A program made the position numbers and the translations under genes. The notes beneath the pieces were generated by a model. The model made no database searches. It was not told the DNA's origin and saw only the letters and a list, made by a program, of their open reading frames with translations. This document shows positions 15,992 to 61,660 of a stretch of 64,000 bases of DNA, in pieces; the stretch's first letter is position 1; every line of letters starts with the position of its first letter. The stretch lies in IMG/VR virus record IMGVR_UViG_3300020122_000238, positions 124,001 to 188,000 of that record; one strand, 5' to 3'.

Positions 15992-16627
15992 ATGGTTCCC
16001 TCCAACATCGCGGACAACTTTCGTGCCGACCCTCAACTTTTTATCATGACCCGTTGGACTCAGATAAATCGGTCCAACCAAACATCAATGCACCCTTTAG
16101 TTGAAATCGATGTGGTTGAAATAGTCCACACCAAGGATGGGTCTTCACTATGTGTTGGTGTGGGCAGTAGCGGGCCTCTTCGATCATTTTGGGTGTTGAA
16201 TACGGAGCTTCTATCCGATACCTCCGCATTCAACTACATCGGAACAGCCTCAGAACTCGCGTTCATACAACTTCACACCTGGTTGTACCGTCTCGAATTG
16301 CTGTGGCCTACCCAAAGGAGAATCGGGCAGATCCGAAGCATTGAGGGTAATCTCGTCCGACTGGCCGATACGATCCCCCCCACGGATGCCTCCTATTTCT
16401 ATGAGGCCTATGATGCTATTCTAAGGACCTTCAGAGTAGCCTCGTCGGAAGAAGTCATTGAGGCTTCTCGGCCACCCTCAGAAACTGAGCAGATACAATT
16501 GACCGTGATTGAGGAGGGGATTGGCCCTCTTCCACCTAATCCTATCCCGAATGTTATCGAAGAACTCCCCAGGACCTATGGTCGCCTGACGTCGTGGGAC
16601 ATCCTGGACTTCGAGTCGGACATCTAG
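15992..16627 (+). CDS. Hypothetical protein with TSWDIL-acidic tail
   Basis: 211 aa ORF after a class A element. Confidence 0.6.
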   Translation: MVPSNIADNFRADPQLFIMTRWTQINRSNQTSMHPLVEIDVVEIVHTKDGSSLCVGVGSSGPLRSFWVLNTELLSDTSAFNYIGTASELAFIQLHTWLYRLELLWPTQRRIGQIRSIEGNLVRLADTIPPTDASYFYEAYDAILRTFRVASSEEVIEASRPPSETEQIQLTVIEEGIGPLPPNPIPNVIEELPRTYGRLTSWDILDFESDI

Positions 16628-16628
16628 C

Positions 16629-16634
16629 GGTGTA
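16629..16634 (+). promoter_or_regulatory. Class A element GGTGTA
   Basis: 12 nt before ATG 16647. Confidence 0.6.
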
Positions 16635-16646
16635 GGGACGAAGCGA

Positions 16647-17540
16647 ATGCCTGACGAGAAAAAGGTCTGCTCCAAATGTGGGGGTACGGGGCGAATCGAG
16701 GTGGACGACCTTACGGTCCGCCAGTGCATCTGCGCGTTTGCCCGAGCAATGAAGGAACACCTCGGGGCAGAGATCGCTCTAGCCCCGTCCATCACGTCGA
16801 GCCCGCTGTTCGAGATGGGCGGCGTGGACAAGGACCCCAAGACCGATCTAACGAGCAAGAACCTCTTCCTCAAAGGGGCCTGGGAAGACCTTCTCCCTCA
16901 TCTGAAATGTGCTCTTGTCGGGAAAGGTCTTTTTTTCTCCTTCAAGGTCTTGACCGACGAGCGGCTCAAGATCGTTTACGTTGGGGATGAGAGCTACAAG
17001 GCTCGCTCCAAGAGCAAGCGAGATGAGTCTCCTACCTTCAACTCGCTGACGGACATCTTGGGCCCGGATGTCGACCTTGTGATCCTACGTATCGGTAAAT
17101 TGGGGTACCCCAATAAAGCCATGCCCGGGATTCTCAAGGAAGCTCTCATGCTTCGTGAAGCTGCCTCGAAAGCTACTTGGATCAACGAGACGCCAGATAG
17201 CTTTTTCGGTCCCGGTCACTTCTCCTACGATGAGAACGTGGCTGAGTACATCGAAAAGAGATTCGCGATCATGGACCTGACGAACAAGAATCGTACGAAG
17301 GAAGCTCCCCAGGGGTGCTACATTCCTTCCGAGCCTGTCGACGTGGATATGAACTCTCCGCCGCAAGCACAGATCGTCACGGAAAAGGCATGGGAATCAG
17401 CTCCGAAGCCTCGGTTCGAGAGCCGTCCTTCGAGTGCCAACTCGGATGGGGCGTTGGGGGATGGCGGCGGAGGGTACAAGCCGAAGTACAAGCCGAAGAA
17501 GTACGGTGACAACGGTGGAGGAGGGGGTCCGCTCGGATGA
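16647..17540 (+). CDS. Zn-finger protein, possible degenerate DnaC-like helicase loader
   Basis: N-terminal CSKCGGTG...CIC; directly upstream of and coupled to the helicase; no intact Walker A seen. Confidence 0.45.
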   Translation: MPDEKKVCSKCGGTGRIEVDDLTVRQCICAFARAMKEHLGAEIALAPSITSSPLFEMGGVDKDPKTDLTSKNLFLKGAWEDLLPHLKCALVGKGLFFSFKVLTDERLKIVYVGDESYKARSKSKRDESPTFNSLTDILGPDVDLVILRIGKLGYPNKAMPGILKEALMLREAASKATWINETPDSFFGPGHFSYDENVAEYIEKRFAIMDLTNKNRTKEAPQGCYIPSEPVDVDMNSPPQAQIVTEKAWESAPKPRFESRPSSANSDGALGDGGGGYKPKYKPKKYGDNGGGGGPLG

Positions 17541-19000
17541 AGCGCCTACTTCGATCCATCATCGACTTCGATGGGCAGACACCTCAAGAGCACCTGACGC
17601 AGAATCTCCAGCGGCTCATTGCTGCTCAAATTGCCTGGAATCGTCCCGACGACGAGAAAATCTTCGAGTACGTCAAGTCGTACTTTCAACAGCGGTTGGA
17701 GATCCCCGCTTCCCAGACGATCAAGGACTATTTCGTCCGCATGGACGACGTCGAGATCCAGGAGCGCATTCCGGATATCGAGGCTTCGCCGACATACGTC
17801 CGAACCAACTTCGCGGCCTTGCTCCAAACGATCCTGGAGCAACAGAACACGAACAAGACGATCGCTCTCCTCAAAGAGACGCACGAGATCGTCACCCGCG
17901 GTTTGGAGATCGTCGAGGGACGCGAGAAGATTCGGAAGCAAGGAGTTCGAGATGCCCTCGTGCATTTCACCTCGAAGTCTCACGACCTGATCATCCCGGA
18001 GTACAACGCGAGGACCTCGGGCGACATCCGGAAGGATGGTCAAGCCATCCTCGATCAGTACCAGGATGCCAAGGTCAACAAGGAGAAGACCTGGGGGAAG
18101 TTTTGCGGGCTCAACGAGATCGATAAGAATACCCACGGAATCAAGCGTGGGGAGCTGTGGGTTCACGCGGCCTTCCCCGGCGAGCTGAAGACCACGTTCT
18201 CGCTCAATTGGTGTTACAACCTCGTCACCCGATATCGGACGAACATCGTCTACTGGTCGCTGGAAATGCCCTACGAGCAGATCCGCCTCCAGTTTTACGT
18301 GCTCCACTCGGCCAACATGAAGTGGCGAGCCATGGGGTACATGCCTCTCGATTACCGGAAGGTCCGGGATGGGGAGCTAACCCCCGCGGAGGAACTCTTC
18401 TACGAGAAGGTTGTTGACGACTTCGCCAACAACCCGGACTACTGCCACTGCGAGATCATCTCCCCTGACCGGGAGGTGACCATGGATGACATTCGCCTGG
18501 AGTGCGAGCTTCTCCACAAGCAGATGGAAGTGGGGCTGATCGTCATCGACCACGGACAAGAGGTCGAGGCTCGCAAGACCAAGAGGTCGAAGGATTACGG
18601 CGTCGAGCTGAACTCTGTCGTTCGGGATGCGAAGCGATTAGCTTTGCACTTCAACCACGGGGAGCGTATCGCCGTCCTCATGCTCTTCCAGATCAACCGG
18701 CAAGGCAAGGACGAGGCGTCCAAGAACGAGGGCAAGTACAAAATGAGCGCCGTGGCCTACGCCAACCAGGTCGAGAAGTCGTCGGACGTGCTGACGACAA
18801 CCTACCTGGATGAGAACCACCGGGCTAACGGCACCACCCTGTTCTGCAACCTCAAGAACCGGGACAACCCGATCTTCGAGCCCTTCTTGGCGTCGGTCCA
18901 CTTCAGCTCGAAGCGGATCTACAACATGGACATGTACCAGGGCAAGGGGATGAGCGTCGAGGAGCACAAGCAGGTGCTCGACGAGATGTTCAACGTGTAA
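17537..19000 (+). CDS. dnaB: DnaB-like replicative helicase
   Basis: GIKRGEL..AAFPGELKT, SLEM, IVIDH, QINR and KNRD motifs. Confidence 0.85.
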   Translation: MKRLLRSIIDFDGQTPQEHLTQNLQRLIAAQIAWNRPDDEKIFEYVKSYFQQRLEIPASQTIKDYFVRMDDVEIQERIPDIEASPTYVRTNFAALLQTILEQQNTNKTIALLKETHEIVTRGLEIVEGREKIRKQGVRDALVHFTSKSHDLIIPEYNARTSGDIRKDGQAILDQYQDAKVNKEKTWGKFCGLNEIDKNTHGIKRGELWVHAAFPGELKTTFSLNWCYNLVTRYRTNIVYWSLEMPYEQIRLQFYVLHSANMKWRAMGYMPLDYRKVRDGELTPAEELFYEKVVDDFANNPDYCHCEIISPDREVTMDDIRLECELLHKQMEVGLIVIDHGQEVEARKTKRSKDYGVELNSVVRDAKRLALHFNHGERIAVLMLFQINRQGKDEASKNEGKYKMSAVAYANQVEKSSDVLTTTYLDENHRANGTTLFCNLKNRDNPIFEPFLASVHFSSKRIYNMDMYQGKGMSVEEHKQVLDEMFNV

Positions 19001-19001
19001 G

Positions 19002-19238
19002 ATGCCCGTACTCGAAAATGAAGAACAGCTTCGGATTCATGCCTTTCTGTCTGTAAGCGCAGTGCAGAGCATCTTCCCAGGGCTGACAGACAAGGAGTAC
19101 GAGGAGTTGGCATTCGTCTTTTTGGAGCTTGAGGCAGAAGACTTGGAGCCCATGACTCTACCTGGGTATGCTCTGTCCTGTACGATCCCTATCCCGAGCC
19201 TCAAGACAGCGTGGGATTACCTGGAGGAGGACCTGTGA
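19002..19238 (+). CDS. Small protein with TAWDYL-acidic tail; paralogue of the next gene
   Basis: QSIFPG...PGY...TAWDYL aligns with QNIFPG...PGY...TSWDHL. Confidence 0.55.
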   Translation: MPVLENEEQLRIHAFLSVSAVQSIFPGLTDKEYEELAFVFLELEAEDLEPMTLPGYALSCTIPIPSLKTAWDYLEEDL

Positions 19239-19492
19239 GCCTTACTGAAGAAGCAGCTCAAATCTGCATTAAAGCCGAGCTGGCTTTTCGTGCCATGCAA
19301 AATATATTCCCAGGTGTGTATGGCTCAAATGCAACCCTGTTGATATGTTCATTTCTCCTTCTTGAAGACACACATTTAAAAGAGATGTGTGTCCCTGGGT
19401 ACCCGTTGTTCACTGAGTTGTGGTGTGTGTCTACAACTAGCTGGGACCATCTTGATGGGAATCTTTTGAAGGATGACAACGATGGCATTTGA
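19235..19492 (+). CDS. Small protein with TSWDHL-acidic tail
   Basis: GTG start overlapping upstream TGA; paralogous to 19002..19238. Confidence 0.55.
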   Translation: MSLTEEAAQICIKAELAFRAMQNIFPGVYGSNATLLICSFLLLEDTHLKEMCVPGYPLFTELWCVSTTSWDHLDGNLLKDDNDGI

Positions 19493-20108
19493 ACCCCAAG
19501 ACCACGAGCGGAAAGAAGTCTTTCGCCGTTGGATCCAGGCTCGCATCGAGGCGATTCACCGCCAGGTGACGGCCTATGACGTGCTCCGCCGGAACGGGGT
19601 GAGCCTTCGGAATGGGGGTGCTCGCGAGGAACAGTTCGCCTGTCCCTTCCACGGGCGAGACAACAAGCCCTCAGTCCGGTATCACCCGGAGTCGAATCGC
19701 GGCCCGTCTCACGCATGGTGCTTCGTGTGCCAGGAACGCTGGGACTGCATCGCCCTCTACAAGAGGTTCGAAGGGTTTGAGGGCAAGTTCACCCAGCTCC
19801 TCGCGATGATCGAGCGGGACAACGGGCTCACCGCGCCTGAAGGCCCCCCGCCAGAGCAGCATGGGGAAGAAGAAGAGGCTCTGGCTCAAGATGCAGAGGT
19901 ACATGGCCTTCTCGGAATCTGTGAACGCCGGCTTCTCGCCGCCAAGGGGCTCTTTGACATGAAGGCCTACCTGGTCCTCGGGACGATCCTCGATCGACTC
20001 TATGGATCTCTTGACGATCGCCGAGTGCTCCCGCTCAAAGCCAAGGAGACCATCCGGCTTGTGCTTGACAAGATCGGACAGAGGGAGCGGGCTTGTCCCG
20101 ACGTCTGA
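19473..20108 (+). CDS. Stand-alone primase-type CHC2 zinc-binding domain protein
   Basis: CPFHGRDNKPS...WCFVC; no TOPRIM domain. Confidence 0.75.
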   Translation: MTTMAFEPQDHERKEVFRRWIQARIEAIHRQVTAYDVLRRNGVSLRNGGAREEQFACPFHGRDNKPSVRYHPESNRGPSHAWCFVCQERWDCIALYKRFEGFEGKFTQLLAMIERDNGLTAPEGPPPEQHGEEEEALAQDAEVHGLLGICERRLLAAKGLFDMKAYLVLGTILDRLYGSLDDRRVLPLKAKETIRLVLDKIGQRERACPDV

Positions 20109-20518
20109 AGCTCCGGACCAACGAGCTGGGCTTCTTGGAGCTGTTTCTCATCTACATCTACGGCGAGGCCTGGGAAGATGAATGGCTCCAGCTTCAAGGC
20201 CAGCCGATCACGGCCAACATCCCACAAATCTCGAAGGCGACGATGGACCATGCCCTTCGAGGTTGGACCCGCCCCTTCATCGACCAGCTAGGCCCAGCGC
20301 CAGCTCTACTTCTACGCAAGCTCCCTGAGACACATTCTCAGTGTGTCCAGCGGAAGCGGTGTAGCCTCTACATCCCCCATTACTGCGTCCCCTCGGCCAA
20401 GAAGATGCCTTGGTGTTTTCAGCCCGAGGGGACGGATGATTTTACGGGGCCTCTCGCGGCGGAAGTCATCCGGCTCTGGCGTGAAGGTGTGTACATCGTG
20501 TTGGTTCAGGAGGCGTGA
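20093..20518 (+). CDS. Hypothetical Cys-rich protein
   Basis: 141 aa filling the gap between the ZBD and polymerase genes. Confidence 0.55.
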   Translation: MSRRLKLRTNELGFLELFLIYIYGEAWEDEWLQLQGQPITANIPQISKATMDHALRGWTRPFIDQLGPAPALLLRKLPETHSQCVQRKRCSLYIPHYCVPSAKKMPWCFQPEGTDDFTGPLAAEVIRLWREGVYIVLVQEA

Positions 20519-23415
20519 TGGCTGACGAGTTCGATGACGACGATTTTGATTTCTTGAACTCCCCAGCTCCTCTCGGACGCAAGGAGCTGGCCCTCACCGC
20601 GATGGCAAAACAGGCGATGAATCGCCCCGTCGAGTCTTTCGAGGATGAGGGTGGGCTCGACGACTTCATGTCGAACACCGGGATGGTCCGGGAACGCGAT
20701 GTCCCGGACCCGACGAAGCCTTGGATGCGTTTCCACGAGTTCGTGCTCGTGAAGACTATCGAGGAGGTTCGAGCAATCGTCGATGCGGCCATCGCTGCCA
20801 AGAACTGCTCGCTCGACCTGGAAACCCAGGGCCTCGACAACCGCATCTTCTACGATGCGGAGGGCAAACCTCAGACGGTTCACAAGATCGTGGGGTTCTG
20901 TATCTCGTACAACTCCAAGACGGGCTACTACATCCCTGTCCGCCACAGGACCGGCGAGGGGATGCCGGATCTGAACGTCAAGCCGAGCGAGGTCGAGGCG
21001 GAAATCCGTCGCCTATGTCTCGCCTCGCAGCCGACCCCCAAGGGCTCTCCGAAGGACCTCCTTTCCTTCAAGGAGTTCGAGGAGGGGCCTCAGCTCGTCA
21101 TCAACTTCTGGAACGCCAAGTTCGATCAGGAGTTCCTCTTCCCCATTACGGGGATCGACTGGTGGCACCCTGACTCCTTCGAGGATGGTTGCCTGGCTGC
21201 CTTTACGGTCTACTCCGATGATTGGCTCGGTCTCAAGGAGAATGCGAAGGAGAAGCTCCGCGTCTCTGAAGAGGTTACGGGATCGGATGGGAGGCGCTTG
21301 AAGGTCGAATACGCCTACGAGATGATCGAGCTGAAGGAGCTGTTTCTCAAGGGCCGTCCGATCCAGTTCGATGCTCTCTCGCCGGATGAGCCGGGCGTGA
21401 TCAAATACGCCTGTTCAGACGCCATCTGCACGAATCTCCTCTGCCTACGAGACGACCTCGTGAAGCTGTGCCGGGACAAGTACGGCTTCACCTACCGTCT
21501 GGAGAAGCAAGTTTCCCAAGTGGCTCGGGTCATGGAACGCAATCGTGCGATGGTGAACCGAAACAAGGTCAAGCTCCTCTTGGACAAGCACACCAAGAAG
21601 CGCGACGAGCTTCTCGTGCTCATCGATGCTCTCGCCAAGAGCAAGGGCTTCCACGGTTTTGATCCCGCGAGCACCAAGCAGCTCGGGGAGTTCCTCTTCG
21701 GGGAGAAGGGTCTGGATATCTCCCCGAAGCCCGAGAAGAACGAGAAGTCACAGCAGTACAAGACCGACGGAGAGACGCTCGAAAACCTCACGAAGGACAT
21801 GGGCCCCAATGCCCCCATGATCCTCCAGTGGATGGTCAAGCTCCGCGAAGAGGAGAAGCTCCTCGGGACCTATCTTCACAACCTCTACGAGAACTACGAC
21901 AAGCACGCGATGCCTCTGTCGGAGATGCGTTTCGACTGGAAGCAGACGGGAGCTGCCACGGGGCGCTTCTCAGCTCCCGGCCGGAAGGATCACATCGACC
22001 ACGGCTTCAGCGGAGTCCCTATTCACGGGATTCCCTCGACGTCCGATCTCCGGACGTGCTTCGAGGCCCGTCCGGGCTACGCGATGTGCAAGTGCGATTA
22101 CGCAGGGCAAGAGCTGCGGATCGTTACGAACCTCTCGAACGAAAGCGTCTGGATCAAGGAGTTCAAGGAAGGGTCGGGCGACCTTCACAGCATCACCGCC
22201 AGGGCCTTCTTCAACAAGGCGGACATTACCAAGGACGAGCGGAAGATGGGCAAGATTGCCAACTTCGCTCTCGTCTACGGTGGTGGCCCGGCTGCCATCA
22301 TGCGGGCAACGGGCTGTGACAAGGTCGAGGGGCAACGCCGGAAGGCGGCCTTCGATAAGGCTGTCCCGACCTTCGCGAAGTGGGTCAAGCAGCAACATAC
22401 GAAAGTCAAGAGGGACAAGGGTGTCTGGACGGCCTTCGGTCGTTGGATCGCCATCCCCGATGCCAACGTGATGGAAGGGGAGATGCTCAACGGTCGGATC
22501 TTGTCGTCGCAAGACGCGAACATGATCCGAGCTGCCTGTGAGCGACACGCGACGAACTACCCGATTCAGGGGAGCGGCGCGGACATTATGAAGATCGCTA
22601 TGGTTCTTCTTCACAAGGAATTCCACCGCCGGGGCTGGCTCCGAAATGGGGGTGACGATTCGGTTCGGATGCTCCTCACGGTTCACGACGAGCTTGTCTT
22701 CGAGATTCGCTACGATCGTGTGGCGGAAGCCATCCCCCTCATCGTCGAGCAGATGGAGATGCCGACGAAGATGGCAAGGCCTCCCTACTCGCCTGTGTGG
22801 CAGGTCCCTCTTGTTGTCGAGCCCTTGATCGGCTTCAACTGGGGCGCGGGCTACGGGATCGTTCCCTTCAAGGAGGGGTATGTCCTCAAGGAGTTCGAAG
22901 TGCTCCTCGGCGGATTCGTCTACTCTCTCACCCGCGTGGTCGAGAAGGAAGGCGAGATTCTGGAGGAGGAAGTCATCGTCAAGACGGAGGAGAAGAGTGG
23001 CAAGAAGGTCTTCACCATCCGGTTGAAGATCGACCCCCCGTGGCTCAAGGGTGGATCCAGCTCACCTCCGCCGCCTCCTTCAACTCCGCCGTCCTCGGAT
23101 AGCCGTGAGAGGATTGCGCCCCCCTCTTCACCGATGGCCCCCCTGTCTCAACAGACGTTGAAGCAGGATGGGCCGCCGCCCGAGGTGGTCACGATTCGAC
23201 TGCGAGAACTGTCCCCGTCCACGCTTCGGCAAGTCCGTGGAGTGTGCGCGCAGTACATCGATCCCGACAATGGATCGCTTCTCCGGCTGATTGACCCGAT
23301 GTCGGGTAAGACGATCATTGACCCCAAGCTCGGAGTCAAGATCAACCCCGAGATGGTTGCGGGGGCTCTCAAGGAGATGCATCTTTCCGACGGACAGTAT
23401 CTTCCCAGTTCGTAA
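20515..23415 (+). CDS. polA: Family A DNA polymerase with 3'-5' exonuclease
   Basis: Exo DLETQG, NAKFD, YACSD; pol TGRFS, DYAGQELR, KIANFALVYG, IQGSGADIMK, VHDE. Confidence 0.93.
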   Translation: MMADEFDDDDFDFLNSPAPLGRKELALTAMAKQAMNRPVESFEDEGGLDDFMSNTGMVRERDVPDPTKPWMRFHEFVLVKTIEEVRAIVDAAIAAKNCSLDLETQGLDNRIFYDAEGKPQTVHKIVGFCISYNSKTGYYIPVRHRTGEGMPDLNVKPSEVEAEIRRLCLASQPTPKGSPKDLLSFKEFEEGPQLVINFWNAKFDQEFLFPITGIDWWHPDSFEDGCLAAFTVYSDDWLGLKENAKEKLRVSEEVTGSDGRRLKVEYAYEMIELKELFLKGRPIQFDALSPDEPGVIKYACSDAICTNLLCLRDDLVKLCRDKYGFTYRLEKQVSQVARVMERNRAMVNRNKVKLLLDKHTKKRDELLVLIDALAKSKGFHGFDPASTKQLGEFLFGEKGLDISPKPEKNEKSQQYKTDGETLENLTKDMGPNAPMILQWMVKLREEEKLLGTYLHNLYENYDKHAMPLSEMRFDWKQTGAATGRFSAPGRKDHIDHGFSGVPIHGIPSTSDLRTCFEARPGYAMCKCDYAGQELRIVTNLSNESVWIKEFKEGSGDLHSITARAFFNKADITKDERKMGKIANFALVYGGGPAAIMRATGCDKVEGQRRKAAFDKAVPTFAKWVKQQHTKVKRDKGVWTAFGRWIAIPDANVMEGEMLNGRILSSQDANMIRAACERHATNYPIQGSGADIMKIAMVLLHKEFHRRGWLRNGGDDSVRMLLTVHDELVFEIRYDRVAEAIPLIVEQMEMPTKMARPPYSPVWQVPLVVEPLIGFNWGAGYGIVPFKEGYVLKEFEVLLGGFVYSLTRVVEKEGEILEEEVIVKTEEKSGKKVFTIRLKIDPPWLKGGSSSPPPPPSTPPSSDSRERIAPPSSPMAPLSQQTLKQDGPPPEVVTIRLRELSPSTLRQVRGVCAQYIDPDNGSLLRLIDPMSGKTIIDPKLGVKINPEMVAGALKEMHLSDGQYLPSS

Positions 23416-24735: not shown

Positions 24736-26310
24736 ATGTCATCCCACGAAGATCTCGTCTTCCACCTTCGAAGCCTGAGCCGCGTGATCTACTACGTCAC
24801 CGACGAGGAAGATCGGTTTCTCGTGAAGCTGCGGGACACCCTCAAGAAGCACGCTGATCGGTGCTGGGTGTTCAGCGCAACCTTCGGGCTCGTTACGCTC
24901 AAGAACCTGATCTCGGACTGGACCTCGAAGCAGCACGCGATCAATCGTGAGCAGCTCTCGATCCACGACGCCTTGGAGAGCATCTACAAGGACGACCCCA
25001 AGGACGAGCGCAATTTCTACGTTTTCACGGACCCGGAGCGCTGGCTCGCCGATGCCCACGTCAATCGGCGCCTCCTGAACATCGTCCACCAGGTCCACCA
25101 GGACATCAGAACCCTCAAGATCCTGATCTTCGTCGGGACCCGCAAGGCGATGCCGGAATCGCTTGCCCCCTACATGGAGGTCATCCAGGACACCGGGCTG
25201 ACGCCGGAAGAGATCATGTCGACGGTCGAGGCAGCCTGCAAGCACCTCCCCGGAGTCGAGCCCCCGCCCAACTGCGCGCAGCTCTTCGCTGGGATGAACA
25301 GCTACCAGATCGACATGGCCGTGGCGAAGTCTATCGTGGCCACCAAGAAGGACGAGACGTCTCCGAAGCGGATCGACCCGGCGCACATCACGAAATACCG
25401 TCGGAACCAGCTCAAGAAGACGGACCTGCTCCAGCTCCTCGACGTCGAGGGGGTGACCTTCGATCAGCTCGGCGGCAACCACCGCTTCAAGGAGTGGGCC
25501 ATTGAGACGAAGGATAGCTGGAGTGAGGAAGGGCGGGCCTTCGGTCTCAAGCCCCCGAAGGGTGTCCTCCTCGTGGGTGTCTGGGGCTGCGGTAAGTCGC
25601 TGGCGTCGAAGGCGATGGCTCAGGCGTGGGGTATGCCGGTCGTCCAGCTCGAAATGGGCAAGCTCCGTTCGGCCAACGTTGGCCAGTCCGAAGCCAACGT
25701 CTATAAGGCCATTCGGCACATCGAGTCGATCGCTCCCTGTGTGGTGTGGATCGATGAGGCCGAGAAGAGCCTCGGCGGCGGGGCGTCCTCGGCGGCCTCC
25801 GATGCAGGAACGACGAGCCGCACGATCGGTATCCTCTCGACATGGCTCCAGGAGACCACGTCTCCGATCTGCCTCGCCCTCACGGCGAACAGCCTGAAAA
25901 CGCTTCCGATCGAGTTCGTCAACCGGATGGACGAGCGGTTCTTCTTCGACATCCCGAGCGAGGAAGAGCGGATCGAGATCCTTCGTATTCATCTCCGCAA
26001 GGCGGGGCAGAACCCGAGTGATTTCCAGCTCGCCGCTCTGTCCGATGCCTGCAAGGGCATGGTCGGTCGCGAGATCGAGCAGACGGTCGGAGCAGGTATG
26101 CGGAAGAGCTTCAAGGTACGCAGCAAGAAGCTCGATGAGACCATCCTCCTGGACATCGCGGGGAAGAAGCCCCGGATCCTGAAGACGATGGTCGACGAGA
26201 TCCGCGAGCTGGTCGAGTGGGTCGGCTTCGACACGGACGCTAACGAAGGGATCAAGGCTCGCCTGGCTTCGGCCCCGAGCAAGGGAAGCAGCTTCAAGCT
26301 CGTCGAGTGA
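24736..26310 (+). CDS. Ycf46-like AAA+ ATPase
   Basis: PKGVLLVGVWGCGKS, WIDEAEK, TAN, RMDERFFFDIP; degenerate N-terminal AAA. Confidence 0.85.
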   Translation: MSSHEDLVFHLRSLSRVIYYVTDEEDRFLVKLRDTLKKHADRCWVFSATFGLVTLKNLISDWTSKQHAINREQLSIHDALESIYKDDPKDERNFYVFTDPERWLADAHVNRRLLNIVHQVHQDIRTLKILIFVGTRKAMPESLAPYMEVIQDTGLTPEEIMSTVEAACKHLPGVEPPPNCAQLFAGMNSYQIDMAVAKSIVATKKDETSPKRIDPAHITKYRRNQLKKTDLLQLLDVEGVTFDQLGGNHRFKEWAIETKDSWSEEGRAFGLKPPKGVLLVGVWGCGKSLASKAMAQAWGMPVVQLEMGKLRSANVGQSEANVYKAIRHIESIAPCVVWIDEAEKSLGGGASSAASDAGTTSRTIGILSTWLQETTSPICLALTANSLKTLPIEFVNRMDERFFFDIPSEEERIEILRIHLRKAGQNPSDFQLAALSDACKGMVGREIEQTVGAGMRKSFKVRSKKLDETILLDIAGKKPRILKTMVDEIRELVEWVGFDTDANEGIKARLASAPSKGSSFKLVE

Positions 26311-28084: not shown

Positions 28085-28090
28085 GGTGTA
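28085..28090 (+). promoter_or_regulatory. Class A element GGTGTA
   Basis: 10 nt before ATG 28101. Confidence 0.65.
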
Positions 28091-28100
28091 GACGTTTCGG

Positions 28101-28688: not shown

Positions 28689-28899
28689 GCTGCGAGATCG
28701 ATCTGGCGAGGTGTGTATTGATTCGAAGCTTGTGAGCTTCCTCTACGATCTCATGCGAGATCATCTTCCGCCGGGGGTTGTGGAGACCCTCGTTCAAAAT
28801 GCGTCGAATCCAGACGTGACCTACACAAATGGTTGGTTGGCATCTTATGCCGAAGACCTCGCCAAGAGACTCGGCGACACCCCCAAAAGGATCAAATGA
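28681..28899 (+). CDS. Hypothetical protein
   Basis: MTELRDRSG..., coupled to thyA. Confidence 0.5.
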   Translation: MTELRDRSGEVCIDSKLVSFLYDLMRDHLPPGVVETLVQNASNPDVTYTNGWLASYAEDLAKRLGDTPKRIK

Positions 28900-30014
28900 A
28901 GCAATATCAAGACGCAGTCCGACACGTCCTCGCCAACGGAACTCGCAAGGAGAATCGGACTGGGGTCGATACCCTATCGACTTTCGGATACTACTACGAA
29001 GTGGACCTCGCCGAGGGTTTCCCGCTCCTCACCACCAAGAACGTGAGCTGGAAGAACATCGTCGTTGAGCTTTTGTGGTTCCTCTCGGGTCAAACCGATA
29101 TCGCGATCCTCAAGCGCCACGGTTGCAAGTTCTGGGATGCTTGGGCGGACCCTGATACGGGCAAGGTCCCGAGCGCCTATGGCAACTTCTGGCGCAAGTT
29201 TCCGGTTCATCGTCAAGATGATCCGAAATCCCCCGCAGTCCAATCCAGGGGATCAGCCATTTCGCCTGACTTCAACGACCAGATCGCCTGGGTGCTCGCT
29301 GAGATGCGCAGGAACCCCATGAGTCGGCGGATGGTCGTCTCGGCTTGGGCTCCCGGAAACGCACAGACGAGCAAGCTCCCGCCCTGCCACTGCCTCTACG
29401 TGTTCAACGTGCAGAACGCGGACCCGACGCCGAGGTACGTGCATTACGGACACAATAGGGGAGAGGACCCTGTGTGCGGCAACTACAATGACGGCCGACG
29501 GGTTCTGCCGCACGGGGAAGGGATGAAGTATCGGGAGGCATGGTGCCCCGACTGCCAGGTCCTTCTCAACGGAGCGCGAGGGGGCGATGTCTTCAAGAAC
29601 CCTCCTGTGGGGGACGACCCGCGTCGCCTCTGCCTTCATTTGACGCAGAGATCGCTGGATGTAATGCTTGGCGCACCGTACAACCTCGCCTCGTACGCGC
29701 TGCTCATCGAGCTGTTCAGCCGGTTCACGGGAATCAAGCCTGGGATTTTCGGGCATTCCGTGGTCGACATGCACATCTACTGTGCCAAGCCCGATGGGTC
29801 TATGGCCGAATACGACCACACCCCTGGTGCTCGCGAGCAACTTACGAGAGAGCCCCGTCTTCTTCCTCGCCTCATCATCGATGACAGTATCAAGGACCTC
29901 AGCGATATCGAACGCCTGATGGATCCATCGGTCACTACAGAAGAAATCATGGGTCTCTTCCGCTTGGAAGGGTACAATCCACACCCGGCCATCAACTTCA
30001 AAGTTGCAGTCTGA
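28896..30014 (+). CDS. thyA: Thymidylate synthase with a Cys/His-rich insertion
   Basis: NRTG, FPLLTTK, ELLWF, SRRMVVSAW, LPPCH, QRSLD, DMHIY; ends FKVAV. Confidence 0.93.
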   Translation: MKQYQDAVRHVLANGTRKENRTGVDTLSTFGYYYEVDLAEGFPLLTTKNVSWKNIVVELLWFLSGQTDIAILKRHGCKFWDAWADPDTGKVPSAYGNFWRKFPVHRQDDPKSPAVQSRGSAISPDFNDQIAWVLAEMRRNPMSRRMVVSAWAPGNAQTSKLPPCHCLYVFNVQNADPTPRYVHYGHNRGEDPVCGNYNDGRRVLPHGEGMKYREAWCPDCQVLLNGARGGDVFKNPPVGDDPRRLCLHLTQRSLDVMLGAPYNLASYALLIELFSRFTGIKPGIFGHSVVDMHIYCAKPDGSMAEYDHTPGAREQLTREPRLLPRLIIDDSIKDLSDIERLMDPSVTTEEIMGLFRLEGYNPHPAINFKVAV

Positions 30015-30032: not shown

Positions 30033-30911
30033 TTGGACGTGGTGACTGAAGAGTTCCTCCGAAAGAAGTACCTTGGCGATCTGCTCTCCCTTCGGCAGAT
30101 CGCTTCTCTTTGTGGTGTGGCTGTCGGCACGATCCGCTACCACATGAAGCGCTTTGGGATTCCTCGCCGAACGAAATCCGAGGCCCTCTCTGGGGACAAG
30201 AACCCCATGCATGGGAAGACGAAGTCAGATGCGACCCGGCGGAAAACCTCAGAGACCCTTCAAGTCACAAATAAGGATCCTGATGTAAAGGCCCGCCGAA
30301 GCGCCTCAACTTCGGGGATCCGAAATCCCATGTATGGGAAAACACACACAGAAGAGGTAAAGGAAGCCGCACACACAAGGCTGAATTCTATACGACACAC
30401 CCCAGACTTTGTGTCAGCTCAAAAAGCTGCAATGCAACGACTGGAAGTCCGCCAAGCTCTCTCGGAGAGCGCCTCCCAAAGAGTGGGGGAGAAGAACCCC
30501 TTCTTTGGGCATGAGCATAGCTCCGAGACCAAGCAGAAAATAGCTCAAGCCAACCGAGGTCGTTTTCTAGGGGAGAAGGGTTCCAACTGGAAGGGCGGGA
30601 AGACTCGACTCTCAGCTCTGATTCGGAACTCCGAACCGGCAATCCGATGGCGAAAGGATGTCTTCAAGAGGGACGCCTATACTTGCCAGAGGTGTGGTCA
30701 AATTGGGGGTCAACTACAGGCGGATCACATTCAACCTCTTGCGGGGCTCCTCGACGAGCACTGCATCAAGACCCTCGAAGATGCGTTCAACTGTCCCACC
30801 CTCTGGGATTTGACCAACGGTCGGACGCTCTGCATTTCGTGTCACAAAAAGACGCCTTCCTACGCGGGCAACTATCAGAAGAATTATCCTGCGTTCAAGG
30901 TCGCGGTGTAG
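30033..30911 (+). mobile_element. Free-standing HNH homing endonuclease with NUMOD3-like repeats
   Basis: NPMHGK/NPMYGKTH/NPFFGHEHS repeats, CQRC, DHI, NGRTLCISCH; ends FKVAV like thyA. Confidence 0.85.
30905..30910 (+). promoter_or_regulatory. Class A element GGTGTA overlapping a stop codon
   Basis: 10 nt before ATG 30921. Confidence 0.6.
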
Positions 30912-30920
30912 GCTTTCACA

Positions 30921-31430
30921 ATGCGGGCTCTCGACTGCTTCCTTCTTGAGGTTATACCCACCGGGGCCCTTGCGTTTTTTGACTTGGACCTCGGGGTGTA
31001 CTATCGACTGGGGGAGTCGCCGGCTCATGGGTATCCCAACATCGTGGAAGGGGAGGTCCAGCGACGGATTCAACGTATATTGTGCGAGCCCGTCGCTGTC
31101 TTCGATAGGATACTTGAGGATCGCGCTATGGAAATGCTGTGGAGAGCAGCATTGTCAAATGGGTGGATCCCTGAAGACACCCTCACAACCTGGTTTGCAT
31201 CGCATGACCTCGATTACCAGGGGTGTCGTATAGTCCACAACGGCTGTGAATTGGCTGTTGTTACTCCTGATACTCTCGGGGGGATTATCAGAGCTGATGA
31301 CGTGCAAGACTCACCCTCTGCCAGAAACCTTCTCCTGTTCAACCTCAAGGGGGTTGTGAGGATTGGAGACACGGAAGCAGTTCAAAACGCACGTCCCACC
31401 TTGTGGGACAAACTTGGAGACGACCTATGA
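30921..31430 (+). CDS. Hypothetical protein with TLWDKL-acidic tail
   Basis: 169 aa after a class A element. Confidence 0.55.
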   Translation: MRALDCFLLEVIPTGALAFFDLDLGVYYRLGESPAHGYPNIVEGEVQRRIQRILCEPVAVFDRILEDRAMEMLWRAALSNGWIPEDTLTTWFASHDLDYQGCRIVHNGCELAVVTPDTLGGIIRADDVQDSPSARNLLLFNLKGVVRIGDTEAVQNARPTLWDKLGDDL

Positions 31431-47682: not shown

Positions 47683-48033
47683 ATGCCCTCCGCTATCCTC
47701 GCCCAACACCTCGCCCAACGCCTGCTTCGCAGCCTGGCTCGCAGGACTGTCTACCTCCCGAAAAGTCGCTACCATCGCATGCTCGGTCTGGAAGACGACA
47801 TCGAGAAGTCCGCTCACGCTGAATGGGTCGAGCATCTCAAGACCTGGGATCTTTACAAGCCATCCCACAAAGCCATCCTGACGCACATCGTAGAGATTTC
47901 CTTCCGGAATGCGCTCTACGACGTGCGTCGGTCGTTCGAAGATGACGCATCAACGGCGTACCCCATCCTCAAGAAGTTCGAGGAGCAGTTCACGCCCCAA
48001 GACCTTCTGACCCCGGCAGTGGTGGAGGCATGA
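47683..48033 (+). CDS. Hypothetical protein
   Basis: GGTGTC variant 10 nt upstream of ATG. Confidence 0.55.
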   Translation: MPSAILAQHLAQRLLRSLARRTVYLPKSRYHRMLGLEDDIEKSAHAEWVEHLKTWDLYKPSHKAILTHIVEISFRNALYDVRRSFEDDASTAYPILKKFEEQFTPQDLLTPAVVEA

Positions 48034-48548
48034 AGCTCGGAGACCTCCTTCTGCACGACGGGCAGCACTGGATTGTCCGTAAGTATGACCCGAAGCGAAC
48101 GCACATGTCGGAGTTGCTTGCAGCCTCCGGACAGGTGAAGGAGATCCGCTTCGATGCCGACCTCAAGGGGGAGGCAACGGTTCTCTCCAACCCTCAGACG
48201 GAGTGGCCGTTCGTGGTCATGGCGTCCAGGCCCAGCTTGGGCCGGTTGCAGCACATTGCTCGCATCATCGGGCCTCTGGCAACTCCGACGGAAGAACCCT
48301 TGAGGTTGTACGTTGACTGGGTGGCGAGTGACCCAGCTCGTATGGGTGGCCCCGTGTTCTTCTCGCCCATGTTGGGGTTGCAACCTGGGAACCTCCTCGT
48401 GGCTGTCCACGACAAAGGCCGCTCTCGGATCGACATCACCGCTCAATTCAAGACGGTCAAGCAACGGATCGCCCATGTCGCCGTCAAGCCGAAACCCGAG
48501 AAGAACGTCTACACCCATCTTCTCGATGACTCCGAGTTCGACGAATGA
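48030..48548 (+). CDS. Hypothetical protein with NVYTHLL-acidic tail
   Basis: 172 aa, coupled. Confidence 0.55.
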   Translation: MKLGDLLLHDGQHWIVRKYDPKRTHMSELLAASGQVKEIRFDADLKGEATVLSNPQTEWPFVVMASRPSLGRLQHIARIIGPLATPTEEPLRLYVDWVASDPARMGGPVFFSPMLGLQPGNLLVAVHDKGRSRIDITAQFKTVKQRIAHVAVKPKPEKNVYTHLLDDSEFDE

Positions 48549-51893: not shown

Positions 51894-51899
51894 GGTGTA
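51894..51899 (+). promoter_or_regulatory. Class A element GGTGTA
   Basis: 10 nt before ATG 51910. Confidence 0.65.
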
Positions 51900-51909
51900 G
51901 CCACGAGGG

Positions 51910-57664: not shown

Positions 57665-59032
57665 ATGAGCACGTCTCAATCTCTTCGCGTTTTGGCGAAG
57701 TATAAAGCCAAAAAGAAGGTCAAGAATCAAGACGGCGAGGACATGACCGTCTACGAGTATTCCGACAAGCAAATCGCCAACCGGAACCGGGAGAAGGCGA
57801 AGCGAATCGAGAAGCTCCGAGGCAAGATCGACGACGTCCGCTCGAAGGCCAAGAAGGACCTGAAGTCGAGCGACCCCGAGAAGATGCTCACGGCACTCGC
57901 CGTGATGCTGATGGACCACACGTATGAAAGGGTTGGGAACGACGAGAGCGCGGACGACGGGCACTTTGGGGTCACGGGCTGGCAGAAGGACCACATCACC
58001 TTCAGCAAGGGCGGGGCGACCATCAAGTACGTCGGCAAGTCCGGCGTCAAGCACGTCAAGAAGGTGACCGACTCGACCATCACCAAGGCGCTCAAGGATG
58101 CCTGTGAGGCGGCTGAGAACGAGACGTCTTGCATCTTCGAGTGGGACGGGGGCAAGGTCTCAGCCGAGAAGGTGAACGCCTACCTGAAGGAGTTCGACAT
58201 CTCGGCGAAGGATATCCGTGGGCTACATGCAAATGTCGAAATGCAGGAACAGCTCAAGGCTGCCAGGAAGAAGGGCGGCAAGCTTCCCGAGGACCCCAAG
58301 AAGCGGGATAAGCAGCTCAAAGAGGAGTTCAAAGAAGCACTCGAAGTCACGGCGGAAGCCGTAGGCCACGAGCCTGCCACGCTGAAGAGCCAATATTTGG
58401 TCCCTGGAATGGAGGAAGATTTCTTGAAGGACGGCGTGATCAACGAGAAGCTCCACACGAAGACGGCAGATCTCAAGCAGGGGTGCGCCGGCTGTAGTTG
58501 CCACGCTAAACCCGAGGAGCACGACCAGTCGGAACGGGTGATTGCTCGTTTCTTGAGCCAGGACAAGAAAGCGGTGGGGTATTACGATACCGATCGTGAT
58601 GAGACTTGGGTGGATCCTACAAAGGACCTCGACAAGTGGCTTGATAGGCTTCTACGCTTGACTCAAGAGGCCAAACGAGATGCCCCAGGAGAGCATCGAC
58701 GTGGAGAAGGCCCTGGGAAGGCCTATCTAGAGCTTTCCAGCTTTATGGGAGACCGGGAGCACACGAAGTGGTACAAGTTCTTCTATGCTTCCACTGTTCA
58801 GAAGGATGTCTCGTCCGCTATAGTCCCCAACGACTATAGCGATCCCAAGATGGCGCAAGACTACAGTCAATGGCTCGACAAGTTGGAGGACGCTATCAAG
58901 GACGCGGACGCGGAAATCCGTAGGGATGACCGTCCTGGAGACAAGATGTTCGAGCTGAAATGGATCATGAAGAACTACAGTAAAGAGAAGTGGTATGCCT
59001 ATTACTTCATGCAGTCCATGACATTCCGGTGA
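57665..59032 (+). CDS. DNA topoisomerase IB with C-terminal extra domain
   Basis: RVGN, GKSG, KDIR, VGH.....KSQY match the catalytic R-K-R-H-Y set. Confidence 0.85.
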   Translation: MSTSQSLRVLAKYKAKKKVKNQDGEDMTVYEYSDKQIANRNREKAKRIEKLRGKIDDVRSKAKKDLKSSDPEKMLTALAVMLMDHTYERVGNDESADDGHFGVTGWQKDHITFSKGGATIKYVGKSGVKHVKKVTDSTITKALKDACEAAENETSCIFEWDGGKVSAEKVNAYLKEFDISAKDIRGLHANVEMQEQLKAARKKGGKLPEDPKKRDKQLKEEFKEALEVTAEAVGHEPATLKSQYLVPGMEEDFLKDGVINEKLHTKTADLKQGCAGCSCHAKPEEHDQSERVIARFLSQDKKAVGYYDTDRDETWVDPTKDLDKWLDRLLRLTQEAKRDAPGEHRRGEGPGKAYLELSSFMGDREHTKWYKFFYASTVQKDVSSAIVPNDYSDPKMAQDYSQWLDKLEDAIKDADAEIRRDDRPGDKMFELKWIMKNYSKEKWYAYYFMQSMTFR

Positions 59033-60080: not shown

Positions 60081-60092
60081 ACCCCTCCTGGC

Positions 60093-60098
60093 TACACC
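60093..60098 (-). promoter_or_regulatory. Class A element GGTGTA
   Basis: 12 nt before methylase ATG 60080. Confidence 0.6.
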
Positions 60099-60100
60099 GC

Positions 60101-60394: not shown

Positions 60395-60478
60395 GGTCAG
60401 TTCCCCACGCCATTCGAGTGCAGGCTACGAGCTTCCTCGTGACACAGGGATCGCTGGCGTGACTCTCGACCCCCATTT

Positions 60479-60517
60479 CATGGATCTCCTACAGGGCGCC
60501 CGGCTTGGGGATCAACC
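60479..60517 (-). promoter_or_regulatory. Class B promoter-like element
   Basis: GGTTGATC-N16-TGTA-GGAGATCC-ATG; the ATG opens an 18-aa ORF. Confidence 0.7.
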
Positions 60518-60522
60518 TTGAA

Positions 60523-61191
60523 TTACAGGTCGACCTCCCAGGAGAAGAGCGGCTCATCCACGGACCGCTCCCGGAGAATCCGAGCCACGGGTTCGTAGCT
60601 CCGCCTGTGGATCGGGCAAGGTCCGCGCGCCTGAAGAGCCCGTGTGTGTTGGTGGTTCGCATCCCCGCCATAACCCTTATTTTTGCTAAAGCCGTACTCA
60701 GGGTAGAGTTTGTCCGATTCGACCATAAGGCGGTCATGGGTGACTTTGGCGATGATACTCGCGGCTGACACAGCAGGGATAAAGCTATCCGCTTTGGGGA
60801 TGCTTCGGGCTCCTTCGATCTTGAGGTTACCATCCACGAAAGCTGCTGAAGGTTTGCCTCCGAACATCATCTGGACTTGAAGTGTTCCGGAATGTACACA
60901 GTCCGTGTGCATCGCACAGAGACAGACATAAACTCCTTTCTGATCGATTTCAGCAGGATGCGCTACGCACATCTGCCAAAAGATTGAAGAGTCCTCTTGA
61001 AGACCCTTAAATGCTCTCTCACGGGCTTTCTCGGTCAAATTCTTCGAATCACCTATAGGAACGCTCGGGACCCAATTCGCTGGGGCAGCGACCATCGCGA
61101 CCACAAGGGGTCCCGCCCACGCTCCATACCCAGCTTCATCGCAGCCAATGATGCAGAGGTTGCTCGAAGGATCGTAGGGTAGTTGAAACAT
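60523..61191 (-). CDS. rnhB: Ribonuclease HII
   Basis: GCDEAG.G..AGPLVVA, DSK, VDG, KAD, SAASIIAK, KGYG, HRRSY. Confidence 0.9.
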   Translation of the reverse strand: MFQLPYDPSSNLCIIGCDEAGYGAWAGPLVVAMVAAPANWVPSVPIGDSKNLTEKARERAFKGLQEDSSIFWQMCVAHPAEIDQKGVYVCLCAMHTDCVHSGTLQVQMMFGGKPSAAFVDGNLKIEGARSIPKADSFIPAVSAASIIAKVTHDRLMVESDKLYPEYGFSKNKGYGGDANHQHTRALQARGPCPIHRRSYEPVARILRERSVDEPLFSWEVDL

Positions 61192-61207
61192 ATACAAACC
61201 CACACCT

Positions 61208-61660
61208 CTATTCATCGGCATCGAGCTGTTCCCAGAAGGTCTTGGGGAGTGCCGGGGGAGGATCTTGCCATCTAATAAGGGTATTGCCGTTTTCTTCAAG
61301 AGAGTCCCAGATAGGTTCCGGACCATCGAGTGGGATAGACCATTCATGCTTCCAGCCGTGAGCGTGGAGAACGTTCGCTTTTACATCAATGATGTACTCC
61401 CACTCCAGATCAAATTGGGATCCTGGAGTTAAAAGTTTCGCGTTGGTGTAATTTTCAGCGGCCCGAGTTCCATAGAACACCTCCCACCTTTTTGAGGTAA
61501 GTATGTCTAAAAGACATTGATTTAGATTACTTCCTCTCCGAGCAATCTGGAGCTTATGCCAGAGGTTCCGCCCCAAGGCTGTTGGGTACGAATCGCAATG
61601 GTTGTAGACGCCAGCCCAGGCGCCAGGCACCCCAACAGCAACACATCCTCGGGTACTCAT
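61208..61660 (-). CDS. Hypothetical protein with TFWEQL-acidic tail
   Basis: MSTRG..., YNHCDSYP..LG, EWEYIID. Confidence 0.6.
   Translation of the reverse strand: MSTRGCVAVGVPGAWAGVYNHCDSYPTALGRNLWHKLQIARRGSNLNQCLLDILTSKRWEVFYGTRAAENYTNAKLLTPGSQFDLEWEYIIDVKANVLHAHGWKHEWSIPLDGPEPIWDSLEENGNTLIRWQDPPPALPKTFWEQLDADE

Follow-up and report, generated by a model that had tools for sequence, protein, structure and literature searches.

The DNA examined, referred to as the window, is a stretch of 64,000 nucleotides from an uncultivated huge phage. It corresponds to G000:C1:124001-188000, where G000 denotes the 275,300-bp virus record IMGVR_UViG_3300020122_000238. A number of small proteins with a similar C-terminal tail are encoded in the window. 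The first, at 15992-16627 (+), is a 211-aa ORFan located between the SNF2 helicase and a Zn-finger protein. Its tail motif, T-S-W-D-I-L, is encoded at 16589-16606, and the acidic run extends to 16624. Two more are found in tandem. The gene at 19002-19238 (+), directly after DnaB, encodes a 78-aa protein with the motif T-A-W-D-Y-L (19206-19223) followed by EEDL. The gene at 19235-19492 (+) encodes an 85-aa paralogue with a GTG start behind GGAGGAGG, and its motif, T-S-W-D-H-L (19436-19453), is followed by a 12-residue acidic tail. A 169-aa ORFan at 30921-31430 (+) has T-L-W-D-K-L at 31398-31415 and then GDDL. A 150-aa ORFan at 61208-61660 (-) has T-F-W-E-Q-L at 61240-61223 on the minus strand and then DADE. 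The sixth, at 48030-48548 (+), is a 172-aa protein with a body of predicted tandem small beta-barrels (body pI 9.7), a K/P linker, and a tail that begins N-V-Y-T-H-L-L-D-D (48504-48545).

Two AAA+ proteins are also encoded in the window and are candidate receptors for the tail. The gene at 39376-40623 (+) encodes a phage ClpX with an N-terminal C4 zinc-binding domain, a GYVG pore loop, and an LGF loop for docking onto ClpP. It is conserved in G001, a close relative (97%), and in G002, a distant complete relative in which DnaB is 53% identical (57%). The gene at 24784-26310 (+) encodes a Cdc48/p97-like classic AAA ATPase with an uncharacterised N-terminal region of about 215 aa.

The original prediction was that a T-x-W-[DE]-x-L motif plus an acidic tail is found at the C-termini of at least five small proteins, with a weaker variant at 48548. 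This observation was confirmed, and it is larger than first described. All six C-termini were present in the sequence at the stated coordinates and read exactly as originally written. In 349 crude gene calls from the whole record (80,285 aa), the strict pattern [TS].W[DE].L occurs 8 times. All 8 lie within 7 aa of a C-terminus and none is internal. The number expected in the C-terminal zones is 0.11 (Poisson P=4e-13), and shuffling of the last 40 aa gave a mean of 0.115 and a maximum of 2. In six frames there are 24 hits, of which 14 are within 12 codons of a stop and are followed by acidic residues. A relaxed rule, W/Y-x-x-[LMIV] followed by an acidic run, gives about 20 carriers in the record. 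The gene calls are crude and several of the tail ORFs have poor codon scores. However, 13 have a tail-keeping counterpart in G001, four of which were aligned along their whole length while only the C-terminal stretch was read for the other nine. The RVxARY set of proteins does not overlap with these carriers, as was originally proposed, and that motif sits mostly at the N-termini of other proteins.

The bodies of the carriers are unrelated. Only the tandem pair 19002/19235 is paralogous (E=2e-11), and every other pairwise similarity is confined to the tail. Sixteen carriers were scanned against Pfam, and a slightly different set of sixteen was scanned against PHROGs. One matched, carrying Zn-ribbon/DUF3268. 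The possibility that the tail is not a protein signal at all, but a nucleotide-level element such as a promoter, terminator, or ribosome site for the next gene, or a chance or compositional effect at gene ends, was also considered. TGG-GA is fixed in all copies, one pair of convergent genes encodes its tails from a 33-nt inverted repeat that could also act as a hairpin, and a separate DNA motif, GGTGTAG, does sit at many gene junctions. However, the codons for Thr, Asp/Glu, and Leu vary freely between copies, and the motif is always in the coding frame and followed by acidic codons. It also occurs inside kinase loops far from gene ends, and it is conserved at the protein level in genomes with 25-50% identical orthologues. 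Together with the enrichment at C-termini, these findings contradict a nucleotide-level or chance origin, which is very unlikely.

The tails are retained in related phages while the bodies change. Between G000 and G001, core proteins are 91-98% identical and core replication proteins are 94-98% identical, but the bodies of the tail proteins are only 20-74% identical. The G001 orthologue of 15992-16627 is 32% identical in the body and 16/16 identical in the tail. The orthologue of 30921-31430 is 74% identical in the body and 15/16 in the tail. The other two aligned tails keep only the W-x-x-L-plus-acidic core, at 9-10 of 16. Of these, the orthologue of 19002-19238 ends KTVWYYLEDDL, and the orthologue of 19235-19492 is about 20% identical in the body but keeps W-T-H-L-L plus an acidic run. 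The G001 orthologue of 61208-61660 ends PKTFWDQLNTDEL. In genomes not used to build the tail profile, 12 of 13 fetched matches in G001 and 5 of 7 in G002 are C-terminal tails. All 15 profile hits of at least 8 bits in 1.6 Mb of other huge-phage loci are also C-terminal. Tails were found sporadically in the related records G004, G008, G011, G013, G016, and L040. Lack of enrichment at C-termini and loss of the tail in homologues had been named beforehand as outcomes that would refute the motif, and neither was observed.

The protein at 48030-48548 is not peripheral, although it was originally listed as a weaker variant. It belongs to a conserved core family and is the ancestral carrier of the motif, carrying the tail across the whole phage group. 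All 35 homologues examined, counting 12 loci and 23 database proteins, some of them the same protein, end in P-[TS]-x-[FYWL]-x-x-L-[LI] plus an acidic run. Of the 12 residues invariant across the 12 aligned sequences, L164 is the only one that lies in the tail. The AlphaFold model of this protein (pLDDT 86.6) places a short helix at 160-165, on Y-T-H-L-L-D. The predicted fold is one of tandem Tudor/KOW-like barrels, and structural searches returned no convincing match.

It is possible that this core carrier is the phage's unrecognised single-stranded-DNA-binding or replisome-organising protein. Its tip would then recruit polymerase, helicase, or primase, as the tips of E. coli SSB, T7 gp2.5, and T4 gp32 do, and the accessory proteins would copy the tip to reach, or compete for, the same sites. 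The basic body, K/P linker, and acidic tip are in keeping with this. No recognisable SSB of three families was found in three complete relatives that encode DnaB, primase, and PolA. Three of the W-tail genes sit inside the SNF2-DnaB-primase-PolA block with overlapping stops and starts. T4 gp32 ends T-D-L-D-D-L-L-N-D-L and T4 gp33 ends T-L-D-F-L-L, and both resemble the motif by eye. However, the tail profiles do not retrieve the gp32, gp33, or gp43 tails of T4. The predicted fold is not an OB fold, and the carrier is not in the replication cluster. A kinase, a membrane-anchored protein, and carriers in the accessory, anti-defence-like region are not obvious replisome clients. No sliding clamp of the beta or gp45 type was found in five records, three of them complete. 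This reading is only a weak possibility. The tail also differs from the tip of bacterial SSB (D-D-D-I-P-F) and the acidic tails of gp2.5 and gp32, which are likewise acidic, hydrophobic peptides on a disordered linker that dock a protein onto many partners. It has no Pro-Phe at the extreme C-terminus and no fixed register to the carboxylate, it also occurs internally, and it sits on more than 20 unrelated proteins rather than on one SSB. The sliding-clamp-binding motifs (bacterial QL[SD]LF and the C-termini of T4 gp43 and gp33) are short hydrophobic C-terminal peptides shared by many clamp clients. Their consensus is different, and family A polymerases do not normally use clamps.

The tail is not restricted to C-termini. 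A phage Ser/Thr kinase family carries the motif at three different sites. These are an N-terminal extension (G000, G001, and others), the β2-β3 loop (G002, G015, G007, and others, the last two being further related records), and the activation segment. In the record that holds the window, the C-terminal copies lie 3-12 residues from the C-terminus, and they lie further from it in relatives. This argues against a degron that needs a free C-terminus. Many of the kinase homologues (55 of 120) carry an N-terminal J domain, which links that family to another protein-remodelling hub.

The interpretation first offered, that the tail is a docking or degron motif for one hub protein such as the phage ClpX or AAA ATPase, an RNA polymerase, or a replisome part, is partly supported. 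Docking to one hub is the reading that best fits the evidence. The degron half is not supported as stated, and none of the named hubs could be confirmed. A signal related to ClpX could take one of two forms. The first is a tethering tail of the SspB type that binds the ClpX zinc-binding domain, in which case the carriers would be adaptors that deliver bound targets to ClpX plus host ClpP, or would themselves be turned over on a timer. The second is a degron engaged directly by the ClpX pore. SspB has the same architecture of a substrate-binding body, a flexible linker, and a short C-terminal tethering peptide. The core carrier lies 5-8 kb downstream of ClpX wherever the stretch upstream of the carrier could be read, and in G008 a W-tail ORF starts about 180 bp after ClpX. 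However, most of the related genomes were reached through their ClpX gene, and this apparent link is biased by how they were found. Most of 37 other ClpX-bearing records show no W-type tail at E<=0.02, and no ClpP was found in G000, G001, or the complete G002. Known ClpX-binding tails such as SspB LRVVK are basic and hydrophobic, whereas the tail described here is acidic, and its carriers are many and unrelated. Co-folding of a ClpX dimer with a tail peptide, the only binding test, scored 0.00, which counts neither for nor against binding. The pore-engaged form conflicts with the variable distance to the C-terminus and with the internal and N-terminal copies. A ClpX-related signal is only a tentative possibility.

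Host-hub mimicry, in which the peptide would bind a conserved host machine, for example RNA polymerase, which these phages must take over, is equally tentative. The kinase would be brought to this machine to phosphorylate it, and the accessory proteins to modify or inhibit it. No RNA polymerase beta-type subunit was detected in G000, G001, or the complete G002, and the motif is conserved across very diverse huge phages. The best structural matches of the N-terminal barrel of the core carrier are the RNA-polymerase-binding Tudor domains of PcrA/UvrD and CarD, but at Z about 7 these are within the noise range. The J-domain kinases imply use of host DnaK, since no phage Hsp70 was found. Carriers also cluster among auxiliary and anti-defence-like genes.

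A signal for loading into the virion is less likely. In this reading the peptide would target proteins to the capsid interior or scaffold so that they are packaged and injected with the DNA. Precedents are the T4 capsid-targeting sequence on internal proteins and Alt, and the C-terminal cargo-loading peptides of encapsulins, which sit on flexible linkers. Unrelated, hypervariable small proteins that share one terminal peptide are exactly the pattern of the T-even internal-protein loci, and the bodies do diverge rapidly between G000 and G001. The core carrier is small and basic like T4 internal proteins, and an injected kinase would parallel Alt. However, several carriers appear to be co-transcribed, and are probably translationally coupled, with replication genes. 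The motif inserted in the kinase activation segment suggests regulation by binding rather than mere loading. The T4 signal is N-terminal, is different in sequence, and is cleaved at L/I-x-E, and no conserved protease site was found next to the tail. The acidic character of the tail is also unlike that of the scaffold- or shell-binding peptides described so far.

The grammar of the tail can be summarized as a basic residue or Pro, an N-cap residue (T, S, or N), a small residue, an aromatic residue (W in the accessory proteins and F/Y in the core family), usually D/E, any residue, L, often a second L, and then a run of acidic residues. The linker is 12% Pro versus 5.9% in the same zone of all proteins, and the residues after the Leu are 50% acidic and 1.6% basic. 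This reads as an N-capped (capping-box) two-turn amphipathic helix that presents the aromatic residue and the Leu(s) on one face, followed by a disordered acidic stretch, on a Pro-rich flexible linker. The acceptance of T, S, or N at the N-cap position fits a helix cap and not a phospho-acceptor. The eukaryotic LIR/AIM motif ([WFY]-x-x-[LIV] with acidic flanks) and acidic activation-domain helices have the same core grammar. Their receptors (Atg8 family, Mediator, and others) do not exist in bacteria, and the likeness is one of physical chemistry only.

The tail is most likely a portable docking peptide, with a probability of roughly 0.8. The enrichment, the selection at the amino acid level, the conservation against diverging bodies, the modularity, and the independence of position were demonstrated from sequence. 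The helix and cap geometry, the binding itself, the existence of a single receptor shared by all carriers, and the identity of that receptor are inferred. Among the candidates, the ClpX zinc-binding domain or the Cdc48-like AAA+ protein and a conserved host machine rank equally, followed by the replisome, and then by the capsid interior or scaffold and other partners, with none of them favored strongly. In this view, the motif would tether whatever body it is attached to onto one conserved receptor, which should have a hydrophobic groove next to a basic patch. Three kinds of carrier are seen, namely the conserved basic beta-barrel protein, which carries the tail in every huge phage of this group examined, the Ser/Thr kinase family, and, in the lineage of this window, about 20 fast-evolving accessory proteins onto which the tail would have been copied. 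In these accessory proteins, variable bodies would be wired to a constant hub.

The window occupies bases 124001-188000 of a 275,300-bp linear IMG/VR virus record (G000), which is about 58% complete by CheckV and has a GC content near 58%. A search of the phage collection returned no relative at the DNA level. The window holds a replication block and other enzymes. These are an SNF2 helicase (14216-15973), a DnaB-like helicase (17537-19000), a primase-like zinc-finger protein (19482-20108), a family A DNA polymerase (20518-23415), a Cdc48-like AAA ATPase (24784-26310), a ClpX with a zinc-binding domain, a GYVG loop, and an LGF loop (39376-40623), and a type IB topoisomerase (57692-59032). The last encodes a eukaryotic-type catalytic core (Pfam Topoisom_I, E=8e-27) and is conserved at the end of the same gene block in a distant relative. 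Two adjacent genes, 28896-30014 and 30033-30911, both end in F-K-V-A-V followed by a stop and are probably paralogues.

All six C-termini of the original prediction were found in the sequence as they had been written, and its observation of a shared tail holds and can be extended. Crude gene calls for the whole record gave 349 genes and 80,285 aa. The strict pattern [TS].W[DE].L occurs eight times in these calls, and all eight lie within 7 residues of the C-terminus, with none internal. The expectation in the C-terminal zones is 0.11 (Poisson P=4e-13), and shuffled tails give at most two. In six frames there are 24 hits, of which 14 lie within 12 codons of a stop and are followed by acidic residues. 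A relaxed rule brings the list to about 20 genes, most of them in the accessory region at 220-275 kb. Only the tandem pair 19002/19235 is paralogous, and all other similarity is confined to the tail. Sixteen carriers were scanned against Pfam, and a slightly different set of sixteen against PHROGs. Only one, at genome positions 220602-221159, had domains, Zn-ribbon/DUF3268.

The codons for Thr, Asp/Glu, and Leu vary between copies, so selection acts on the peptide and not on the DNA. A DNA-level or chance origin is excluded for practical purposes. The heptamer GGTGTAG occurs 62 times in the record, at window positions 14198-14204, 15975-15981, 16629-16635, 28085-28091, 30905-30911, and 51894-51900 and at about 55 more sites in the record. 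Of these copies, 32 have an ATG 8-12 nt downstream, most often 9. It precedes replication, structural-looking, and tail-bearing genes alike, and its TAG is sometimes the stop codon of the upstream gene. It may be an unusual ribosome-binding or promoter-proximal element. The final codons of gene 30033-30911 form part of one such element just before the next gene. Two convergent genes, 243708-243908 on the plus strand and 243905-244621 on the minus strand of the genome, end in the same peptide, W-x-x-L-L-I-D-D-D-F-D, which is encoded by a 33-nt inverted repeat (91% complementary, 5-nt spacer) at genome positions 243870-243940 (15870-15940 of locus L013). This looks like a copied tail cassette that could also fold as a hairpin between the genes. 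A perfect tail (L-T-G-W-E-R-L-D-E-E-F, then a stop) sits on the minus strand of L013 at 7398-7463 (genome about 235398-235463), in a 22-codon frame cut off from a possible upstream body by an in-frame stop. It could be a decaying carrier, a read-through gene, or a sequencing error.

Aligned on the aromatic residue, the consensus is (R/K)-P-T-A-W-[DE]-x-L-[L/D]-acidic. The position two before the Trp is T, S, or N, usually preceded by Pro, and the position after the Trp is usually D/E, which is the grammar of a helix N-cap with a capping box. A role of the Thr as a phosphorylation site was rejected because Asn substitutes for it. The 25 residues upstream are 12% Pro, against 5.9% for the same zone of all proteins. 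The residues after the Leu are 50% acidic and 1.6% basic, and this stretch runs 3-12 residues. The AlphaFold model of one carrier puts a short helix exactly on Y-T-H-L-L-D. The tail therefore reads as a short amphipathic helix plus an acidic run on a flexible tether. The enrichment at C-termini, the selection on the peptide, its retention on diverging bodies, and its use at more than one position are established by the sequences, while the helix geometry, binding to a partner, and the existence and identity of a single receptor are inferred.

A second motif of the original prediction, R-V-x-A-R-[YF], is also real. It sits mostly within the first 5-15 residues of larger proteins in the replication region (the window 54664 gene, with its N-terminus at 54679, and 57343, 38102, 43328, and 56954) and sometimes near C-termini (copies near 14133 on the minus strand, 54660, and 56544). 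It does not overlap the acidic-tail set.

A search with DnaB led to G001, a near-identical relative (98% identical, a 350-kb record) represented by two records, and to the distant G002 (53%, a complete 437-kb record). Two short metagenome contigs were also recovered, a set too small for phylogenetic profiling of candidate receptors. A profile of the 20 tails found 17 matches in G001 and 11 in G002. Of those that were retrieved, 12 of 13 in G001 and 5 of 7 in G002 are C-terminal tails. One of the two non-C-terminal matches in G002 is a copy in a kinase. Another internal match, G-P-T-C-W-V-E-L-D-A-D-G-D at window 9094-9132, lies in a very large unannotated protein (the 1436-aa ORF 6139-10449) and is conserved in G001, but it is probably a chance resemblance in a beta-rich region. 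Between G000 and G001 the core replication proteins are 91-98% identical. The four tail proteins that could be aligned in full have bodies only 32%, 52%, 20%, and 74% identical. Two of their tails are identical or nearly so (16/16 and 15/16), and the other two keep only the W-x-x-L-plus-acidic core, at 10/16 and 9/16. In G002 and in a 56% relative the small genes beside DnaB are simply absent. Thus, the accessory carriers are hypervariable inserts between conserved genes, with a constant tail.

The 172-aa protein at 48030-48548, which had been proposed as a weaker variant, is the conserved carrier. It is 96% identical between G000 and G001 and has homologues in the ClpX-linked loci of a dozen other huge phages and 23 homologues in the large protein collection. 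Every homologue read ends in the same grammar, with F, Y, or L in place of W, after a Pro/Lys/Ala-rich linker. The body models with confidence (pLDDT 86.6) as tandem small beta-barrels and has a pI of 9.7. Fold searches of PDB, AFDB clusters, BFVD, ESM Atlas, and VIA wide gave only generic Tudor/KOW/SH3-like matches. The best of these are the RNA-polymerase-binding Tudor domains of PcrA/UvrD and CarD at Z about 7, which is within the noise range of the method. The gene order is conserved down to 25% identity and consists of ClpX, DUF1848, this gene, a CxxCxxCC protein with overlapping stop and start, and a YpsA/SLOG protein. In one of these loci, L133, the ClpX appeared to lack the zinc-binding domain, but this was due to a mis-called start and the domain is present upstream.

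Among 37 other ClpX-bearing huge-phage records, W-type tails are rare at E<=0.02. Even so, five of the six best hits are genuine C-terminal tails, in records G008, G011, G013, and G016. More were found in G004, G008, and locus L040. In 1.6 Mb of such loci, all 15 profile hits of at least 8 bits are C-terminal.

The motif is also carried by a Ser/Thr-kinase-like protein (genome 214423-215337, which is 6423-7337 of locus L012) that belongs to a large huge-phage family. In G000 and G001 it lies in an N-terminal extension. In G002 and in records G015 and G007 it sits instead in the loop between the glycine-rich strand pair and the catalytic-lysine strand. Of 229 database homologues, 120 were read, and about 29 of these carry a copy at one of three sites, an N-terminal extension, the beta2-beta3 loop, or the activation segment. 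Each copy is framed by Pro/Lys/Ala-rich spacers. An N-terminal J domain, with an HPD motif, is present in 55 of the 120, while no phage Hsp70 was found in the record or in complete relatives, which implies recruitment of host DnaK. The motif is therefore a portable module that does not need a free terminus, and this speaks for docking and against a terminal degron. An ssrA-like ClpX degron requires a signal at the extreme C-terminus with a free carboxylate, such as LAA-COOH, and the tails do not fit it, since their distance to the end is variable and functional-looking copies occur in the N-terminal extension and in two kinase loops. The kinase itself cannot be the general receptor because it was not found in several complete members.

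The interpretation in the original prediction is supported only in part. A docking motif for one hub is the best-supported reading, but the degron alternative and each of the hubs that were named remain unproven. A tether to ClpX or another AAA+ protein is possible but tentative. The tails share with the XB motif of SspB, which binds the ClpX zinc-binding domain, a short C-terminal peptide on a flexible linker behind a folded body; here the linker is Pro-rich and the bodies are folded or ORFan. The conserved neighborhood and the parallel with the J domains also favor this. Against it are the acidic chemistry of the tail and the fact that relatives were ascertained through ClpX. Co-folding of a ClpX dimer, modelled with an alignment, with a 32-aa tail scored 0.00, a score that by the method's own statement is no evidence either way. 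A host machine such as RNA polymerase is an equally tentative candidate. No phage RNA polymerase beta-type subunit was detected, the conservation of the motif is very broad, and the N-domain of the core carrier has the weak likeness to RNA-polymerase-binding Tudor domains. A sigma-like hit in G002 was below the cut-off.

A replisome tip appears somewhat less likely. A basic body with an acidic tip, the missing SSB, and three carriers inside the replication operon favor it. G000, G001, the complete G002, G008, and G015 encode DnaB, primase, and a family A polymerase, and no recognizable SSB (PF00436, PF08804, and PF10991), sliding clamp, ClpP, or RNA polymerase beta-type subunit was found in the record or in complete relatives. 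However, the core carrier models as tandem small barrels with no OB match. The tip of SSB is an acidic run ending in [IL]-P-F at the very C-terminus, but the tails here end variably (DDL, DDV, DDI, DADE, LLDD, KGD, and others) 3-12 residues after the Leu, and none ends in P-F. The consensus also differs from the QL[SD]LF-like clamp-binding motif, and there was no PF02768 or PF09116 match in G000, G001, G002, G005, or G008. T4 gp32 and gp33 end in peptides that look similar by eye, but when both tail profiles were used to scan 62 kb of T4 that includes genes 32, 33, 43, and 55, these tails were not among the top hits. Similarity to them was rejected as statistically unsupported, and the likeness is a lead only.

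Loading into the virion is the least likely of these readings. It has precedents in the T4 capsid-targeting sequence and in encapsulins, and, as with the T4 sequence, one terminal peptide is shared by unrelated, hypervariable proteins. The T4 sequence is N-terminal, is removed by the prohead protease at L/I-x-E, and is carried by proteins found in virions. The motif here is mostly C-terminal and no conserved cleavage site adjoins it. Apparent co-transcription with replication genes and the insertion in a kinase activation loop speak against this reading. The accessory region where most tail genes lie also encodes, at L012:167-1552, L012:5107-6423, L012:17791-19065, L014:4143-5123, L014:10692-11435, and L013:18296-19429, NAMPT-type NAD salvage, adenylosuccinate synthetase, a 2H phosphoesterase with weak Acb1 (anti-CBASS) similarity, an ADP-ribosylglycohydrolase, a Bax1-inhibitor-like membrane protein, and a cytidylyltransferase-like protein.

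Docking tails as such are known. No description was found, in the literature that could be searched, of this motif, its spread over about 20 hypervariable proteins, or its reuse inside a kinase family and a conserved core protein across many huge phages. A bolder and doubtful possibility is a zip-code system in a clade of huge phages, in which one conserved receptor would read a single N-capped aromatic-Leu-acidic peptide. In this view, the phage lineage has pasted the peptide onto more than 20 rapidly diversifying proteins, a kinase (even inside its activation loop), and a core basic protein. The receptor would be either the phage's own ClpX acting with host ClpP, which would make the carriers an arsenal of adaptors feeding host factors to a hijacked protease, or the capsid, which would make them an injected anti-defense arsenal. 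Either way, it would be a modular client-recruitment network of a size not described for any phage.

Short linear motifs are the wiring of eukaryotic and eukaryotic-virus protein networks, but very few are known in phages. This one sits on roughly 6% of the genes of a huge phage. It is conserved while the proteins carrying it change almost beyond recognition between strains whose replication proteins are 94-98% identical, which is the pattern expected when variable, arms-race proteins must stay plugged into an invariant machine. It gives a sequence handle on about 20 ORFans at once, and it marks a conserved core protein of unknown function and a widespread phage kinase family as putative clients of the same partner. 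It offers a direct experimental route to a central hub of huge-phage infection biology. If the hub is ClpX or the capsid, it would reveal a new strategy of host takeover or of protein injection.
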